DNA of 64,000 bases from Dimorphilus gyrociliatus (lineage: Eukaryota > Animalia > Annelida). Under the pieces are notes generated by a model. It was not told where the DNA came from, did no database searches, and was given only the letters and a program-made list of their open reading frames with translations. Below, one piece after another: positions 8,601 through 19,059 of the stretch (positions are counted from its first letter, which is position 1; each line of letters begins with the position of its first letter). The position numbers and the translations under genes are program-made. The DNA lies in NCBI GenBank assembly GCA_904063045.1, contig CAJFCJ010000005.1, forward strand, positions 2,061,988 through 2,125,987. Reading direction: 5' to 3'.

Positions 8601-11600
8601 CGTACAATATACAGTTTATCAATACGCATATATATACATATAGTATATACGTTCAGACATTGTATGTAAACTATATACAATATATCATATATATATATGC
8701 GCTGTTCAAATGTAAATGATGATTAATTGACTAAACACTTACCGCTAATTATATTATTTTGTTTTTCCATTCGTATCCACAATAAAGTTTCTAATATCGC
8801 CTTTTTGTTTAAAATAATTAAATAAGAAAATTAAAAAATTTGCTTTCATTAATTAATTAATAAAAAACTTTTCTCGCACTTTTCTCCATCTTTTTCTCGC
8901 TCGTCTACTCGCATTTAATTCATTACCAATCGACAATTTCTCCACAGAACAATCATCTATAAAACAAACATAGGAAAGTGATATGATGAAACACTTTTAT
9001 TGAAAAGTTATATACTGAATATGTATATATAGTATATATACAGATATATATATATACTATAGATATTCAATCGATTAAGCCTAAGTAATATACAAATAAA
9101 AGTACATGGACTTTTAGTATTTGAAAGCATCTATGCCATATTATACTTTGCATTCTAACCATTTAAACTAAAACTATCACGTGATTAGAACAAATTACTT
9201 TTAAATTAGTGACGGTTTCTTTTTTTATAAAATTACTGAATAAATTAACTAAGTAAAAGAAAGAAAACACAAAACAAACAAACAAACAAAAAAAAGTTAG
9301 ATACCTTCTTTACACAGATTTGGTAATGTAACTGGTGTAACTACCGTCTGTAGAATACTAGTTCTCCAAGCCCTCTTTGAAGAGCTTGAAAACATAAAAT
9401 GGTTACCATTAGCAACAACCGGCGTTGTTGGTTGTGACATGGCTCGTGTTATGCTATCAGGGGAAATTCCTTTTTCAGTGTCAATCTTTCATAAGTGATA
9501 TCATTAATCTAATTAAGACGAAAAGTAACTTACAGTAACTTATTCGGCCTAAAAGTAGATCTACTCTTTAGAGTATTCCTATAAGAAAAGAAGAAAGAAG
9601 AAGAGAAGAAGAAAGTAGAAATGAAAAAAAAAAGTATATTTACTTACGATTTAGTCGAAATTTCGTCTTCAGAGCCGTCACTTTTATCCTCTGTATCACT
9701 TGCAATAATCCTACGGCCAAATCGATAGGGAAGAGTTCTACAACGTCGAACCATAATATCCGGCGAAGTATTCAAAAAACTTGGACGAGGTCTTAGATTT
9801 GCCGTTGGCTTAGATGGTGTTTTGTCCTCACTTTCATCAGATATTGAACGTTTTCGAACGCTTCCGAAGCTACTATCAAGTTCGTCTGAGTTTTCATTTC
9901 GATCGAATAGTTGAAATGGCTACAAATAAAGGAAGGAAAAAAAAGAGAGAAAAATGACGAAAATTTAATATCTCCATCAATAATAGGAAGAGAAAAAACT
10001 GGGGCAATTGAGCCTCTATTCTTTCAATATATTATGTTTTATTCATACTTTAGGTGGGCTTGTATCAGTAATATTATCAAGATTTTCGTGTAAATGACTT
10101 TTTTGTTTTTCCTCAACAAGATCCTTAATTAATGAAATAAGAACCGTCAAACGATGCTTCTCGTCCAAACTATTAGAGTTCTGTTTACGAATAATTTTCA
10201 ATAATTTATACAATACATACATTTCCCATTCGACGGATAAAAAAATATAAAAGAAAAGAGACATAAACTAACCTTTAATTTAGTTTGTATAGTACTCTGT
10301 TCAATTTTACTTAATCCATTTATTATCTTTGTTAGTACAATTGATATTTCCTCTTGATTTCGTCCTTTATATATATTTTTATATGCGTTTAATTAATAAG
10401 TAATTAAATTATTGATTGAATATTAATATTATTTTCTTAATTAATACCTTGTAATAAATTACAATATTGCCCAAATCGATATATGGGACATCTAGTACAT
10501 ATATCGTTATTCTTTCTCCTCGACGATTCGTAAGCATTTTTAAACGCTCTTTGTAGTAAAGCCATTATATCTGTTACCTAAAAATATTAATATAAAATAC
10601 TATAATACTATTAATTTTATATCAATATCATATTACTTACATTTTTTGCAGTAGCACATTGGAATACGTACATACATAATTTTAAATTTTGCGGTACTCT
10701 TGCAACAATTCCAAAATGGTTATCATTAATTTTACCCTAAAAAATTTACATAAACCGTTTACTAAAAATAGAAATAAAAAATGTTTTTATCACGTTTATT
10801 TACCTGTGTACAATGAGCTATATCTTTAAATTTTCTATTAAATTGTGCAATATTTCTATGAAGGTTAATACAACAGATTTGATCGTGTTGTATCTGAAAA
10901 AGCATAGTCATTGGTTTCCTACAATCGTTCATTTCAGACGATTGTATATCATCTATAATAATAAAAAAAAGTAATAAAAAAATTGATAGAAATATATGAT
11001 TAATATAGTTTATGGATATATTTTTTTAAATGGATTAACTAAAGAAAAGTAATTAGATATTGTTATATAGTATTTTTTATAAAACCTTTACTCTCATTTC
11101 CACTATCGAATGACGAATCAAATAGGTCTGATGCATTTGATATATTATTGCGTTTTAAGTTTATAAATTCATCCAGATATTCACTACTAATATTCTTTGT
11201 CTCCAAAGGATCCTTTCCTATAATATATAGAATGTTTTATTTCAATATAGATATAAATATGTTAGAGTATTTTATTAACCGACGAATAGTACTTCGTTAA
11301 CATGTCCTGGAAGAGGTTCAACTATTACTTTGTAATCTTGTTCAAATCTAGTTCCATCACCCAAAATTGATGTTATTTCTTTAATCTGTTTCATATTAGC
11401 AGATTATTTTGTTTGTTAAACAATAAATCTGTCAAAATACAAAAAAAATATTCAATTTATCTTAATACTCACCATTTGCGGTTTAGGTAATTTACATATA
11501 TAACAATCAGAATCTGCATCGTTAAACGCCACAATAAAGGCAACAGTCGTTTCTTCGTTTGGTACTTTTTCGAAATAGACATCTTTTAATCCATATTCAT

Positions 11601-11871
11601 ACATAAATTGTTCTTTCGTATCCAATAATCGAACACTATTCTTGGTAAAATGAATACTTATCTTTGAAGTTTCATCATTCCGAAGACTAAGTTCACCGGC
11701 TATCCAATATAGGATAGATTTTAGGGGATAATGCTTTGATAGTGATGTTTTTCCAATATATTCGATATCATTAAAGGCCTGTATCACTTCAACATGATCC
11801 TTAAGACGGTCGGTACTGCCCACTAAACTAAAAAGTTTTCGTCTTCGTTGAGCTTTTATAATTTCTAACAT
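5645..11871 (-). CDS. TBC1D4: TBC1D1/TBC1D4 (AS160/pollux)-like Rab-GAP: PTB domain(s) + TBC domain + coiled coil, multi-exon
   Basis: N-terminal PTB-like exon (11452-11871). Family motifs AWRTSILQTVVTP, AILETLLWIRMEKQN and RLKLDYDEITPC. TBC catalytic fingers ILIDLGRTFP and GYCQG in ORF 5645-6826. Confidence 0.9.
7918..8389 (-). CDS. Candidate alternative first exon of the TBC1D1/4 gene, inside the intron 7228-8742
   Basis: 175-aa stop-free ORF. Internal donor CAG|GTGATA (exon end 7918) is phase 1, matching the phase-1 acceptor of the exon starting near 7227. Confidence 0.5.
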
Positions 11872-12190
11872 AGTTTACGATTACTAATTAAGATTATTCT
11901 TAGAAAAATTCCTTAGCTGTACTTCTTCAACTTAAAAGGCTATTATTAGAATGTATTTAAGGAAAACTCCTAAAAGATTTTGCCACGGCGCCAACAGTTT
12001 CGTATTTATTTTAGCAATATATGACATTACTCAAAATAATTTAGATTATTTTATTATTATGATTATTAAATGTTAAATTAACATATGAAAAAATAATACA
12101 AAGGAACTTTCAACTTTATACGAAAACAACTTAACGAAATAGCAGACGACTGACCCTTATTTGCATAGCCGCCGCAACACCAGAAAGAAT

Positions 12191-14048
12191 ATGGCGAATG
12201 GTCAAGAGAGTACTACACGTTGGTTGCCGCTTGAAAGCAACCCAGATGTAAGATGAATAAATTTTTTATGTAATTCTTTAATAAAATAAATTTTCTTTCG
12301 TTTCAGCTTATGAACAAAGTAAGTTTTATCAAACTTTAACTAATAAAGCATGTTAATGACATAACCATCAGCAACTGGTTGCCAGAAGCGCTTTTTTTTT
12401 TTTTGTCATTTGAACAATCTACGATTAGTACTAATTTAATTTTTTAACAATTCACTAAATCTATATTTTATCAAGTTAATTCTTGCTTTTTCATGAAATT
12501 TGTTCATAGTAATATAATATTACTATCTAAAACTTCCGATTTTGCAATAGTTCATCCGATTATTGCCCAATACCTTATATTGTGCAATACAAAGACAATA
12601 TCTACGAAAAACATTGAAATTATGATTATCTGAGAATTCGAGCAATATTTCACATTGTAATGCAATAATTATTCTGATCGAGATTTGATATTAACTAGTT
12701 ATTTGATATAGTATAGTAATACTTGTTTTCAAATTGTATTACCCTTATACAGTATGTTGAAGAGCTGGGAGCGGATATGGGCGAGTATCGTTTCACAGAT
12801 ATTTTTGGATTCGACGCAGACCTATTATGCATGGTTCCAAGACCTGTTCTAGGTCTGGTTCTACTCTATCCTCTCACGGAGAAGGTAATTTGTTATTATA
12901 ATTTGGCAACAAAATTTTAATAAGTTAATTTATACCACAAAAAATTCTTTTAGTCGGAGTCTGGCGAAATTGGTAAAGAAGATCAAAAATCGGATTTATA
13001 TTACACAAAACAAACAATTGGTAATGCTTGTGGAACTGTTGGTTTGATTCATATTTTAGCCAATACAAAAGAAACCCTAAACATTAAAGGTAAAACTATG
13101 GCAATATTTTTAAATTTAAATAATTGTTTAATTTTAAAATAAAAGCTGACTCGATAATTGGGAAATTCTTGGAAGCTACAAAGTCAATGTCTCCTCAAGA
13201 AAAAGCCGTTTATCTTGAAAAGGATGAAAGCTTTGGTGCAACTCATGAGGTTATAGCTCAACAAGGTCAAACACAGGTTAGTTCGGATGTATATGATCGG
13301 ACTATGTATACTATAACCATTATAATTAAACATTAAATGAAACAGTAGGCAAGTTTAGACAGTGCTATTTTGTACATGAAAAGAGCATCTCCGCAGAAAT
13401 CACTTGAAAGTGAACTAGACAACTTGAAAATAGTAGACAAAAGTAGTAAAACTAGTGGAAATTGTATAACGCGTAAACTTAAACCTATATTTGAAAGCAA
13501 AAATAAGAGCGGTTCAATGAGAAGCAATCGTTCACCAAATCCACAACAAGACCTAAAAGTGACTTCATCCGAAAGTAGTATTGATGATGTCAGTTAACGT
13601 CTAAATCTAGTTATAAGAATATTTGATATAAAAAACTTTGGAAAATAATTTATTTATTGTAGTTTTCCACTTGAGAAATGTCTTAAACGATAACCTTAAT
13701 TCATTTTGTTTATAGTGTCCCGGTAGAGAAGATAAGGTCGATTTGCATTTCATAGCTTTTGTTCACTCCAACGGAACTCTATATGAATTAGGTATGTGCT
13801 TATTACTTTTTTAATAAAAACTCAAGTTTCTTTGTCAATACAAAAGATGGAAGAAAGAATGGCCCAACTGCCCATGGTCCAACCACTCCTGACAATTTGC
13901 TTGAGGTAATGTCAAAAGATTAATTAAATATAAGGTCATAGTTTATTTGTAATTTTAACAGGATACTGTGGCAGTTGTAAAGAAGTTCATGGCCCGTGAT
14001 CCAGATCAAATGCACTTTAATCTGGTGGCTCTAGCCAAGAATATGTAA
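12191..14048 (+). CDS. UCHL3: Ubiquitin C-terminal hydrolase, UCH-L1/L3 family
   Basis: RWLPLESNPD start; 12-nt microexon 12307-12318 (LMNK); catalytic KQTIGNACGTVGLIH; KVDLHFIAFV; YELDGRK; C-terminal FNLVALAKNM*. Confidence 0.95.
13349..13588 (+). CDS. Candidate 240-nt cassette exon of the UCH gene
   Basis: CAGTAG acceptor ends at 13348, followed by 80 open codons and a GAT|GTCAGT donor at 13589. Phase 0/0, as required by the flanking exons (end 13276, start 13716). Confidence 0.55.
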
Positions 14049-14252
14049 AATTTATTTTGTATTACTCGGATACACAGCTTGAAAAATACACTTTATATAA
14101 TTTGAGCATTCAACTAAAATTTATTTCGTGTCCTTAATATTGTAGAATATTATAAAAGGACTGACTTCAAAAGCAAACCTCACAACGATGAATCAAGTAA
14201 TTTCAAAAGAGCATTTAATAACAAACTTGCTGTCAAAGTTTGGTAATACTCT

Positions 14253-14920
14253 CTATACGCTAACGTATCCTCTTAATCTTTGTTCATTCGTTTTTACATG
14301 TTTCACTAGTAGTATAGCAGCTATTAGGGTAAATAAGCTTGTGCTTGCTCCAACATAATAAGACATTCCGAATTCCAGAACTTTATTTTGGAACTTGAGG
14401 CCAAATATTACAATAGCACTTGTGTTCGACATAACTAAAATGAAATTTATAAATTAAAGAAGCCTATACCATTGTTATTTTTAGAACTTACAGGATAACA
14501 CCAATGAGCCAATAATTATTTTCAGCATAAATCTATCTCTATGACAGCCCTGGCAGAATAAGAACACAAAAGAAAAAAGACTTGCTCCAACTATACAGAT
14601 AAAACCTAAAATTGACAATGCTTGAACCGCATAGAACCAATCTGTAAACGAATAATTTTATTAAGCGTTATTACCATTTTGAACTTTTAATTTTTTATGA
14701 GCTTACAGTCTAAAACAACATATGGTGAACCATTAAAGATGCTGCTACAGTGTATAAAACTACAAGTTTGCCATAATCCAAATCTCGAGTCATTTGTTGA
14801 ATTTTTAGTAATAAATGAAGTGCTTGTCATCCATCTTGTCGTAGAAAGTGATATACAATTTAATAAAGTACATAGAAATGTTGTAGAGAAGCCAACCGAT
14901 AAAGGATTACAAATTGCCAT
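14253..14920 (-). CDS. Claudin/PMP22-EMP-MP20 family tetraspan protein
   Basis: TM1 followed by W...FGLWQTC...C signature, further hydrophobic helices in downstream exons, C-terminus ...RGYVSV*. Confidence 0.8.
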
Positions 14921-15100
14921 AACAACACTTTTGTTAAAGAAATTTCACATTTCACGAAAGTTACCAATCAAAATGCTTATCATGTGACTCCAGTCACATG
15001 ACTTAACAATTAGTACTACATCTATAGATACTTTTCAAAATGGCGCCTTTATGTCAAAGTCTCGTCAGACATTATGTATTACCCGGATATTTTTTATTTC

Positions 15101-15185
15101 AGTGATAGATGGCAGAAGATATTCTTTTACCAGGTTAGACAGGTGGCGCTGTTAAAGGAAGTGGGATACAGCAGAGGACGCTAGG
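15101..15185 (+). promoter_or_regulatory. Three tandem CTCF-like motifs between the head-to-head tetraspan genes
   Basis: AGATGGCAG (15107), AGGTGGCGC (15141) and AGAGGACGC (15173); same orientation, 34 and 32 bp apart. Confidence 0.55.
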
Positions 15186-15231
15186 CGCCATAAATAATCA
15201 ACCTTAAAAAAAGATTTAATTTTCATCAAGA

Positions 15232-16699
15232 ATGGCATCAGCCTGGGTTATAATTGGTCTAACAGTGACTGCTGTAGCTTTCGTGTGTTCAATTGTCTCA
15301 TATACCATACCATTCTGGCTGAACGAATCGAACAGTCATTTGGGTTTATGGGCAAAGTGTAGGTATGTATCAATCATGATGTAGAGGGCTGAGACAGAGG
15401 GGTTATAAAGGGATATATATAAAGAAATTCTGGCAACGATTATCTATAATACTGATCATTTTATCAGAGGTCGGAAATTCGAAAGAGATTGGGAATGTGA
15501 CTGGTACTGGGAAAATAACTTCAAGGAGGCCAAAGCGAAACCGAGTAAGTGAAAGTATTAAAAATAACTTTAATCATAAATATAAAGTAACCTTAATATT
15601 TATAATATTTCTTTTTTTTTTCAAACAGTATGGTGGCAAGCATCTATGGGCTTAATGGGTGTTGGCGTATTGCTATTGTTTATTACATTTCTTATAGGTC
15701 TAACGGCTTTATGCTGTTGTAAATCCGCCGTTAAATCCGGTTACTATATCTCCCTCTTTTTAATGCTGGCCTGTAAGTATATTAAAAAGAAAAAAAAACT
15801 ATTCTGATTGAATGCACAAGTAATCAATCCTTAGATGAAGAATCTATAGCATGTTATAGAAAAAGCATGATTTGCATAAAGTTTTGCAGCCTTTCTTTCT
15901 CCTCATTATAAGTTTCATTATATTCTGTTTCGTTCACTCTATCTATTTTTCCTCTCTCTCTTTATCAATTATACATTCGTACCCATCTTTATAATTGAAA
16001 TTAGTATTTTGTTTTTTTTTCTTTGCCCGACTGTTTCTTAAAAACAGGTATGCTACATATCGCTACCGCTGCTACATTCTACGGTTTTGGACATGAAAGA
16101 CGAGCAATACTGAGAGAAGTGTTGGGTCATTCCTATTGGATCTGCGTCAGCACGGCTTGCCTCTGTTTTGTGGCGTTCTGTTTATATTTAATGGACGCAT
16201 GTCGACACCAATATAGAGCTTTAAGTACCAAGGAAATCGTTTAATTTTTACGCTTTTTAATGTAAGTGTTCCTCCCCGAACGCCTTGGTTTTTTTTCTCC
16301 CCATTTACCACTTTTCTCTTTTTTTTTGACCATTTATTTTATTAGTTTACGTAAAATGTCGTTTATAGAACAACATTATTTCAACCCCTTAAAGGACTTT
16401 CTCTATCTGAATTATAAAAGCTTTTATATATATTGTATATATACTGTATATTGTTGTAAGTAGCTGTAACGAACTTTTTCTTTTATTTTAAAGTTATACT
16501 AGTGGCCATTGGGATAGCGTTGTTCGTCGTGAAGATGATGGTAATTAGAGGACTGGAAGTTAAAGACCTAAGTAAAAGTTTCGACTGGGCAGTATGGTTA
16601 GGAGTCGGTGGTGCATTATCAGCGCTCTTGGCTTCAATTCTCTTTACTTGCGCCGGTTGCGGAGCTAGTTACGAAGGTTATTACCGCGGCGACGTGTAA
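15232..16699 (+). CDS. Claudin/PMP22-like tetraspan with two alternative terminal exons (A 16048-16244, B 16494-16699)
   Basis: MASAWVIIGLTVTAVAFVCSIVSYTIPFW...LGLWAKC...C signature; TM2 exon ends at a phase-1 donor (GCC T|GTAAGT). Both downstream exons have phase-1 acceptors and each encodes two hydrophobic helices plus a stop. Confidence 0.8.
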
Positions 16700-17077
16700 A
16701 TAGAAAAATTTGGCACACACGGGGGAAAATATCTATCTCAAAATGGCTTTATATTTTTACTGTATACAAGAAAATATGTAGAATCTCTTCTCATTCTTTA
16801 AAAAAAAAGTTTTTTCTCTCATTTTCTCTTTTTTTTATATACTTTTTTATGTTTGTAAATTGTCTTTTCTTTCTTTCTTTTTACGTATATATATATATAC
16901 ATACAATGCGTATATTTGTTCTTTTGTATGTGTATAGTAAATTTCCTGATATTTTTGTTATAGAATCTCTAGTTTCTCAACGCAATATACTCGAATTTTT
17001 TAAGCTAATTTTATTAACCTTTTATTTTACAAAACTAATTCAGCCCGCAGCATTGAATTGTCTACTCAGTCCTGTTT

Positions 17078-19059
17078 TTATTCTGGATCCGTGCTATTTC
17101 TATACAAACTAGGTAACAGGTACTTTTTAAGAACGAAATCGGAAGTCCTCAAAGCTCCTTCCATTAATACTTGGCATCCACCGTCGCAATAATCGCTTCC
17201 GACCACATACACTTCGTGACCTTTAGCGAGCGGTTTTAGAGCTGATTTCATAGCCCTATGTGGTTGTATGCAGCGCTTCCAGACGTACTTAGCTTTCGAA
17301 CCCCAATCGTGAAATAGAACAGCAGCTGATGAGTCGAGCTTTCTAGGATAAATGCAGCGCTCCAGCTGGTCCAATAAGTCTATAGAGAGTCTTTTTTTAA
17401 AAATATCCTGGCTGCTTCTATGTCTTGAGTAAAGTCCACGGAAATAATCGGCATCCACACCATCCACATTTATCGTTACAAGATTGTTTTCCATCTTTAT
17501 AAATCTCCTTGAGGGTAAATCTGTCACGACAACATCCTTTATGAGAAGATCCGTTTTTGACCTAATAGCCGCTCCAAAAGCAGGGAAAACTTCCATTTTC
17601 GGTAATGGTACATGAGTGGTTTCTGCAGGGTCTTTACCGTTCATCCTCTGCATGGAAACATGATGCAGGGCATGAGGTGGAATGGCTAAGACTACCCGTC
17701 GGGCGCAAACTCTCTCAACACCTCCACCTCCTACGAAAGTTAAGTAGTAACGCCTATGCTTCCGGTAAATGCACGCAAGTTTACTTGCTAAGTATTTTTT
17801 TCGAATCGTGTCAGTCTTTAGATCCTGAGACTCTGTGAATTCTTTGAGCATTGCGTCTATTATTCGATTGAGGCCTTTCTTCATAAATTTTCTTTTGTCG
17901 TGTTTATAATTGCGATGAAAGTCGGTTAGAATTTGCGCGTTTAAATTACTAGTTAGACTGGAAAAGTATTCAAATCGCTCTCCAAACTTCCAAACATTAT
18001 CAAAATTTTTAGGTTTTCTATAGCTACCATATTCACGCACTAAATTGCGGAAGCTTTTCAAAGAAAAAAAAAACGCTAATTATGATTATGAAAAAAATTA
18101 CCAAAATTATGCTCTATTTTTAATATAATATGCATGATTATTATAGATAAATGGAAAATTTACCCAGTTTTAAAAAGAGGTACGCTTGAGAATTTGCTTC
18201 TCTTTCGATCCGTGCTATTGACAGTCCAAGTAGACAAGCGCCGAAGGATAGTTTCCGGTTGCAGGCTGACAGTCCCTAATCGAACATCTTTACAACGGTG
18301 GCGTTGGCTTTGCAAATAATAACTGCATGAGTCTGGGTTCGGTAGGAACGTGGAGAGCTCCTCGGTGAGGTTTAGAGCACGGATCAGTTTCATCAGACGT
18401 TCTTGCTGTGTCGGATCAAAGTGAGAGGCGCCAAACTCGAACCAGGTGGACGAGTTCGCCCTCACGGAACGTATTCGTCCACCGAATCGATCGGACGCCT
18501 CAAAAAGACCAATTTTTGTTCCTTTGCTCCCGCGCAGTTTGTAAGCGGTGTAAACACCACCTAAACCGCCTCCGATTACCGCCACGTCGAAGCATTCTGG
18601 CGGTCGTCGTTATGTGGCCGCATTTATTTAAAATTACCCCTTTATTTTATAATAATATGACTTACCTCGTCCCTCTATAGCTATCTCCTTTTCGTATTGC
18701 GACTTGTGAATCATAACTATACAAACTATAACTGCTATTGTACCAAAAATCATAGCGATCGTCATCAAAGTTTTTGCATGATTGGAGAAAAACTGACTAA
18801 CAGCTCCCTTAGGCTTATTATCTTCCTCGTTTAGCGTCAGCATGTCGGCCGCCCTCGACGCTCTTTTTCCCAACGAAGGACCTCCAGTTATCTGTTGAAC
18901 AAAGAGAAAGCATTTTTTAAGTATAAGGTCAATAAACTTTAGATTAGGAAAATTTCGAATTCAGGTCATTTCTAAATTAAATTTTACCGGATTTAAGGGC
19001 ATAGTTACTGAGAGAGGTTGTAAGGTTGGATCCACTGGCCTTAAATGCTGTTTTTGCAT
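17078..19059 (-). CDS. FAD-dependent amine/L-amino-acid oxidase (achacin/aplysianin-like) with an N-terminal TM anchor
   Basis: ECFDVAVIGGGLGG...LFEASDRFGGRI dinucleotide-binding motif, FEFGA, C-terminal VYVVGSDY...EGAL. Upstream exon 18666-18891 has TM TLMTIAMIFGTIAVIVCIVMI. The ATG at 19059 is inferred from a phase-0 join; an alternative ATG lies at 18843. Confidence 0.75.

Follow-up and report, generated by a model that had tools for sequence, protein, structure and literature searches.

A conserved open frame in the crossover-loop intron of an annelid UCH-L3-type deubiquitinase: a candidate 80-residue cassette exon

A 64,000-nucleotide (nt) stretch of the genome of the annelid Dimorphilus gyrociliatus (assembly GCA_904063045.1, contig CAJFCJ010000005.1, positions 2,061,988 to 2,125,987), hereafter the window, carries on its plus strand a gene for a UCH-L3-type deubiquitinase. 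The 439-nt intron between exons 4 and 5 of this gene (13277–13715, numbered from the first letter of the window) interrupts the active-site crossover loop and contains a 240-nt open segment, 13349–13588. We consider this segment probably (at a probability of roughly 0.68) a genuine and maintained cassette exon, included rarely or conditionally and skipped in bulk mRNA, that would code for an 80-residue insert in the loop. This is the best explanation because of the comparative evidence: a deeply diverged relative keeps the open frame, its phase and its splice motifs.

The candidate exon and its conservation in a relative

The segment at 13349–13588 is without a stop in the frame that continues exon 4, so that its 80 codons lie in phase 0/0, with the borders tag/G and GAT/gtcagt (the slash marking the splice site). 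It is preceded by TAG at 13346–13348, the second half of a tandem acceptor CAGTAG (13343–13348), and is followed by the donor GTCAGT at 13589–13594; the triplet TAA at 13595–13597 ends the frame if the donor is read through. All of these elements had been listed in a preliminary description of the window, and all are present in the sequence. The remaining two plus-strand frames of the segment hold 10 and 12 stops, and the minus strand is likewise open over 86 codons (13336–13593). Searches at the DNA and the protein level find a single copy of the segment in the genome, and an origin from a repeat or transposon was rejected on that ground. With the exon used, the 439-nt intron would be divided into introns of 72 and 127 nt (56 and 119 nt in the relative), which brings the sizes nearer to those of the other introns of the gene (55–69 nt).

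Exon 4 (13146–13276) ends ...GQTQ in phase 0 at the junction cag/gttagt and aligns with residues 117–158 of human UCH-L3 (1uch), whereas exon 5 (13716–13791) begins CPGREDKVDLHF and aligns with residues 160–183. The last residue of exon 4 is placed opposite E158 and the second residue of exon 5 opposite residue 160. The intron thus splits the crossover loop, as the preliminary description had proposed, and does so between the equivalents of E158 and A159, ten residues before the catalytic histidine. In an AlphaFold2 model of the 80-residue insert alone, the peptide is essentially disordered, with a predicted local distance difference test score (pLDDT) of 63.6, a predicted template modelling score (pTM) of 0.16 and a single five-residue helix.

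Among 1.84 billion cluster representatives, phmmer identified one true match to the peptide, P0001 (68 residues, E 3.7e-9). A second match, P0002, is a 281-residue repeat protein aligned over a short low-complexity stretch only, and was taken as spurious. The genomic Logan contigs of the relative carry P0001 as a reading frame between two Peptidase_C12 frames, and therefore in the orthologous intron. The four sequencing runs of this relative are identical over the region and carry no polymorphism information, and a search with the reading frame of exon 4 for further relatives returned the same relative only. As gapped BLAST chained through the introns and failed to delimit the conserved block, MAFFT alignment and ungapped blocks were used instead; substitution counts for the constitutive exons were summed exon by exon.

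At this distance the constitutive UCH exons are 75% identical in nucleotides, with differences distributed 35/20/115 over the three codon positions. The proportion of differing synonymous sites (pS) is 0.77, which is saturated, and that of differing nonsynonymous sites (pN) is 0.105. The introns align at identities of 0.41–0.59 with many gaps, where a shuffled control gives 0.52; one short intron reaches 0.69. The segment matches positions 9926–10165 of the relative's contig L002 without a gap across all 240 nt, at 69.6% identity and with 44 of the 80 residues identical. It lies within a gapless run of 282 columns (13336–13617), the longest in the alignment of the gene, and its conservation relative to the intron background has a binomial P of 2e-12. 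The acceptor context AACAGTAG/GC and the donor context GATGAT/GTCAGTT are identical in both species, including nine letters around CAGTAG. The conserved intronic flank that begins with the donor spans about 32 nt (13589–13620), with 26 of 32 letters (81%) identical and no gaps; farther on, identity falls to the shuffled level. In the relative, too, all 80 codons are open, and their phase fits exons 4 and 5 of its gene, whereas the other plus-strand frames of the two species hold 9–17 stops each. Conservation in a related species, on which the preliminary description had made its proposal depend, is therefore borne out, as neither stops nor frameshifts interrupt the relative's copy.

The open frame by itself carries much less weight. 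The preliminary description had held so long a frame to be improbable in an intron, and locally it is: an in-phase open run of at least 82 codons occurs in 0.2–0.4% of dinucleotide shuffles of the intron. Across the window, the improbability does not hold, with about 24 runs of that length expected in six frames of block-shuffled copies and 91 observed. The frame is thus locally unusual, yet in a scan of many windows it is weak evidence by itself. We weighed whether it is a chance frame in an ordinary intron, without function. The block-shuffled runs fit such a frame, as do the RNA contigs (described below), which contain skipping only, and the lack of any Pfam, atlas or word-search match. The alignment with the relative already contradicts this reading: the gapless match stands far above the background of the remaining intron sequence, which cannot be aligned, and we regard a chance frame as very improbable.

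The searches behind this lack of matches were made with the 80–82-residue peptide. Pfam returned no family, the ESM Atlas gave a best score of 0.78, which is below any useful level, and a word search yielded no candidate, which is weak evidence since P0001 was also missed. A scan of Joint Genome Institute (JGI) metagenomes with the two-species alignment found nothing, and an exact look-up of the 73-residue frame that starts at the segment's ATG found no record. A stand-alone small gene starting from this ATG was disfavored, as the codon is not conserved in the relative, which has ATA.

Coding signal, transcripts and rival readings

Several measures distinguish the proposed frame from mere conservation. 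When the same substitutions are placed at random, the frame of the relative stays open in 1–3% of trials, and in 15% when the sites are jittered locally. Plus frame 0 is the best of the six frames in amino-acid identity, mean BLOSUM62 score and conservative replacements; in synonymous codons it ties with the open antisense frame, at 12 each. In the local-jitter simulation conditioned on an open frame, amino-acid identity in plus frame 0 has a P value of 0.0017, the BLOSUM score one of 0.0007 and the number of synonymous codons one of 0.043. The core of the insert is a conserved basic stretch of 13 residues, CITRKLKPIFESK, and both this core and the start of the insert, ASLDSA, differ between the species at third codon positions only. 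In sum, the alignment shows a protein-level signal specific to the proposed frame, though a modest one.

The substitution pattern differs from that of the constitutive exons in both classes of site, with pS 0.42 in the candidate against 0.77 (Fisher P 1.8e-5) and pN 0.28 against 0.105 (P 7e-8). The same combination has been published for conserved alternative exons that are regulated and often tissue-specific: synonymous divergence (dS) is low, nonsynonymous divergence (dN) is raised, the length is divisible by three and conservation extends into the flanking intron (Plass and Eyras 2006; Lu et al. 2009; Xing and Lee 2005). In a base-rate control over 8 kb of collinear sequence, nearly all conserved ungapped blocks of at least 90 nt are frames open in both species.

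Open on the opposite strand is a run of 86 codons, and the minus strand could in principle be the coding one, the run being an exon of an overlapping antisense gene, for example of the convergent tetraspan gene. In both species minus frame 1 lacks stops, and its peptide is hydrophobic; a minus-strand gene for an LHFPL-like membrane protein lies just downstream (14253–14920). However, the same simulation gives the open antisense frame P values of 0.29, 0.14 and 0.39, none of them significant, and an open antisense frame is to be expected in 17% of codon shuffles of the plus-strand frame. The frame and the conservation of the neighboring gene both stop at its stop codon at 14253, no conserved minus-strand acceptor was seen on reading the alignment, and the antisense peptide has no Pfam match. 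An antisense exon here seems to us scarcely credible.

A number of observations, both in the sequence and in the transcripts, weigh against a protein-coding cassette exon. The differences in the segment are spread near-evenly over the codon positions (20/24/29, chi-square P 0.43), and omega, the ratio of nonsynonymous to synonymous divergence, is 0.56; for these two reasons much of the constraint is placed at the nucleotide level. The donor has C at position +3, and the acceptor is without a pyrimidine tract, in which two constitutive acceptors of the gene are equally poor. Within the tandem acceptor, TAG would normally face competition from the CAG upstream of it, whose use would give an immediate stop. 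The comparison rests on one relative species, and among the 1.84 billion cluster representatives phmmer found no protein with the insert inside a UCH. The points from RNA are taken up below.

The evenness of the differences, together with the strong conservation of synonymous sites, is what might be seen if the block were a conserved non-coding element, either an intronic regulator of splicing or transcription or an unclassified RNA, in which the open frame is incidental in both species. The extension of conservation for 32 nt past the donor of the frame, and RNA contigs without an inclusion joint, would suit such an element as well. Against it stands the joint chance of an in-phase frame (0.002–0.004) and of its retention in the relative (0.01–0.15), which comes to about 1e-4 to 6e-4. 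In addition, the amino-acid signal is specific to plus frame 0, the 240 nt contain zero indels, and the open frame and the conserved block have the same extent, with conserved AG and GT at the borders. Rfam covariance models gave no match at the candidate block at E up to 1, and an inverted-repeat search found no pairing common to both species; in the relative the core can pair over 8 nt with the donor flank, but the window does not preserve this pairing. We judge a purely non-coding element quite unlikely. For the candidate exon, we read the two-species alignment as indicating that the constraint is on RNA or DNA as well as on protein.

Assembled RNA contigs from four runs bear on the use of the exon: X6, in which exon depth is about 5,200, is from the same species, X4 comes from a closer relative that is 90–95% alike, X1 represents a coral metatranscriptome, and X2 is 95–99% alike. 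Such contigs drop rare forms, and hence show presence rather than absence; they limit the abundance of the exon without excluding it. The contigs of X2 cover only parts of exons 2–4 and the 3' end, and stop short of the exon 4/5 junction. In contigs of X6, X1 and X4, which stem from three studies, position 13276 is joined straight to 13716. No joint at 13349 or 13588 occurs among them, within the limit that rare forms may have been dropped, and the inclusion junctions anticipated in the preliminary description found no counterpart in these three data sets. Skipping as the sole junction is an outcome that this description had named as refuting; in contigs that may lack rare forms it carries less weight.

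The sole RNA over the segment is one X6 contig, 13342–13743, with a depth of 12.9, or about 0.25% of exon depth. This contig is unspliced at both the proposed donor and the real acceptor of exon 5, and begins upstream of the proposed acceptor. It may be just pre-mRNA, because intron 1 bears a similar low-depth X6 contig (12393–12637, depth 20.7), in the 434-nt intron that follows a microexon.

The exact start of the contig admits another interpretation. Exon 4 ends in ACAG, as do positions 13342–13345, and consequently the first 31-letter word common to an exon 4>13346 joint and to the unspliced path starts at 13342. Applied to exon 5, this 31-letter word reasoning yields the contig ends that are in fact observed there (13714 and 13743). 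The start at 13342 fits a branch of the assembly graph produced by use of the upstream CAG, and hints at such use from contig ends, no junction being observed; a coverage gap or a polymorphism might produce it too.

Use of the upstream CAG would have a consequence that the preliminary description did not mention. Whereas the TAG acceptor opens the 80-codon exon, the CAG acceptor starts the exon at 13346 and makes TAG its first codon. CAGTAG is the sole acceptor of the UCH gene with a second AG within 5 nt. The exon might thus serve mainly unproductive splicing, in which use of CAG, or read-through of the weak donor to the TAA at 13595, would yield a UCH without the catalytic histidine and aspartate or a transcript prone to degradation, and so lower the output of enzyme. 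The conservation of CAGTAG, with CAG 3 nt upstream of the TAG acceptor, is in keeping with this function, as are the contig start at exactly 13342, insofar as contig ends reflect an exon 4>13346 joint, the unspliced passage of that contig across the donor, and the dominance of nucleotide-level constraint in the segment. However, a poison exon needs neither 80 open codons nor 240 gapless nucleotides nor an amino-acid signal specific to one frame; no exon 4>13346 junction is present among the RNA contigs, and coverage gaps or polymorphisms can also make contig ends. On the aligned sequences, unproductive outcomes alone cannot explain the conserved open frame, and we hold a mainly unproductive role to be unlikely.

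Host gene and neighborhood

The exon structure of the host gene was set by spliced RNA contigs, and exons were searched singly against profiles and structures, the catalytic triad likewise being read exon by exon. The assignment to UCH in the preliminary description is confirmed by matches to the Peptidase_C12 profile (PF01088) at profile positions 13–57, 72–103, 111–152 and 156–177, and by the PDB, in which the top matches of the exons are UCH-L3 (1UCH and 1XD3), with UCH-L1 behind. In the genome search the summed PF01088 score is 102 bits, neighboring in-frame pieces included. The catalytic residues are all present: NACG in exon 3, DLHF in exon 5 and an aspartate codon across the exon 5/6 junction.

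All parts of the gene lie on the plus strand. The coding part of exon 1 (12191–12247) starts with the ATG at 12191; its end at 12247 is given by spliced contigs of X6 and X1, and it is conserved in the relative. Within the apparent intron 1 of the window sits a 12-nt microexon (12307–12318, LMNK) with borders ag/ and /gtaagt, whose letters are found inside the 12247>12753 joint of X6 and X1, and which is conserved in the relative as LMNT (L002 8866–8877). RNA joints delimit the remaining exons. Exon 2 (12753–12884) matches PF01088 positions 13–57, exon 3 (12954–13089), with the catalytic cysteine motif NACG in its translation, positions 72–103, exon 4 positions 111–152, and exon 5, with the catalytic histidine motif DLHF, positions 156–177. 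Exon 6 spans 13847–13905, the aspartate codon being split G/AT over the exon 5/6 junction, and exon 7 (13962–14048) carries the stop codon in its translation. A complete spliced UCH mRNA of the worm is contained at an identity of at least 99% in the coral metatranscriptome X1, and therefore the animal or a near-identical strain was present in that coral sample.

Two other Peptidase_C12 (PF01088) loci are found in the same genome (G000 C6:409200–409794 and C11:320006–320446), and are presumably of the UCH-L5 and BAP1 types. The insert has no detectable similarity to either of these two loci.

The window from 9000 to 18100 is collinear with contig L002 of the relative, and exons of several neighboring genes are 82–90% identical to it, better conserved than the UCH exons (75%). 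The LHFPL-like tetraspan gene on the minus strand (14253–14920; PF10242, a weak match) has three exons, is convergent with the UCH gene and ends about 200 nt from the UCH stop. One 965-nt X6 contig spans from UCH exon 7 to beyond 14200, so that the 3' ends of the two genes may overlap.

In the 434-nt intron after the microexon no conserved block was found in the relative. Sub-threshold Rfam matches resembling C/D-box snoRNAs occur at 12614–12681 (sn2429, 22.6 bits, E 0.28) and at 12223–12318 (snoR24, E 0.55). A 98-nt block at 15126–15223 is 91% identical to the relative, with differences of 3/4/2 over the codon positions and thus without third-position bias, and no frame open in both species extends over more than 70% of it. 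Possible readings of this block are a conserved non-coding element and the border of an exon that belongs to the neighboring plus-strand gene.

Proposed loop extension and comparison with known systems

In UCH-L3 the crossover loop runs from the helix before it to the strand headed by the catalytic histidine; Johnston et al. are said to have set its limits, in 1997, at residues 147–166. Reported loop lengths are 11 residues in UCH-L1, 14 in UCH-L3, 17 in UCH-L5 and 21 in BAP1, and the longer loops of UCH-L5 and BAP1 go with the processing of larger ubiquitin conjugates and chains. An extended UCH-L3 loop is reported to allow cleavage of K48 di-ubiquitin in vitro, for which more than 14 residues are given as required (Popp et al. 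2009; Zhou et al. 2012). The relation between loop length and substrate size invoked in the preliminary description is thus present in the literature.

In the mechanism we propose, most transcripts would skip the exon and encode a canonical UCH-L3-type enzyme, and the exon would be included at low frequency or in certain cells, stages or sexes. If TAG served as acceptor and GTCAGT as donor, 80 essentially disordered residues would be added midway along the crossover loop. This would lengthen the loop from about 14 residues to about 94, well past the threshold of roughly 14, and the size filter would probably be loosened; since loops of more than 14 residues are reported to be needed for di-ubiquitin cleavage, a loop of about 94 is expected not to act as a tight filter. 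The conserved basic core CITRKLKPIFESK may add a docking or regulatory site. Unproductive outcomes, through the CAG acceptor or skipping of the donor, may coexist with productive inclusion.

A further-reaching proposal, in part that of the preliminary description, is that splicing toggles this UCH-L3-type enzyme between a small-adduct hydrolase and a form with a loop of about 94 residues that admits ubiquitin chains or folded substrates, or whose targeting or regulation depends on the insert, with the CAG/TAG choice adding a premature stop, and that this arrangement has been kept across deeply diverged dinophilid-type annelids. We offer it tentatively, as possible though doubtful. The crossover loop is the accepted size filter of the UCH family, its role having been tested mainly with engineered loops in vitro. 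If the proposal were true, a natural exon that lengthens the loop about sevenfold, long kept in two lineages, would give a biological handle on the purpose of the filter, and one gene would span substrate ranges otherwise divided between short-loop and long-loop UCH paralogues. There is also a lesson for annotation: in a compact genome, comparison with a relative at saturated distance can expose exons missed by bulk transcriptome assemblies.

The host gene is an ordinary UCH-L3 type, and long loops, fixed or engineered, as well as alternative exons selected at the RNA level, are already known. We know of no natural isoform of UCH-L3 or UCH-L1 in which splicing adds an insert to the loop, and a limited literature search found no report of such an insert in a crossover loop. 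With human UCH-L3 (1UCH, 1XD3) the skipping form shares a gap-free alignment across exons 4 and 5 (residues 117–158 and 160–183) and the cysteine, histidine and aspartate motifs; it differs in that inclusion of the exon would take the loop from about 14 residues to about 94. UCH-L5 (UCH37) and BAP1 likewise have crossover loops longer than that of UCH-L3, but these are fixed in separate genes and far shorter than 94 residues.

Two further comparisons concern splicing. Tandem acceptors of the NAGNAG kind have two AGs 3 nt apart, and the choice between them adds or removes one residue. CAGTAG has the same spacing, with both AGs conserved; however, at this acceptor the outcome would be a stop codon with one AG and an 80-residue insert with the other. 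Conserved, regulated alternative exons share with the candidate a multiple-of-three length, lower dS, higher dN and a conserved flanking intron, whereas their alternative use was known from transcripts and that of the candidate is proposed from a comparison of two species. The effect proposed here has its mechanistic precedent in engineered insertions in the UCH-L3 loop. These were made artificially and assayed in vitro, whereas an insertion through the candidate exon would be their natural, splice-controlled counterpart.

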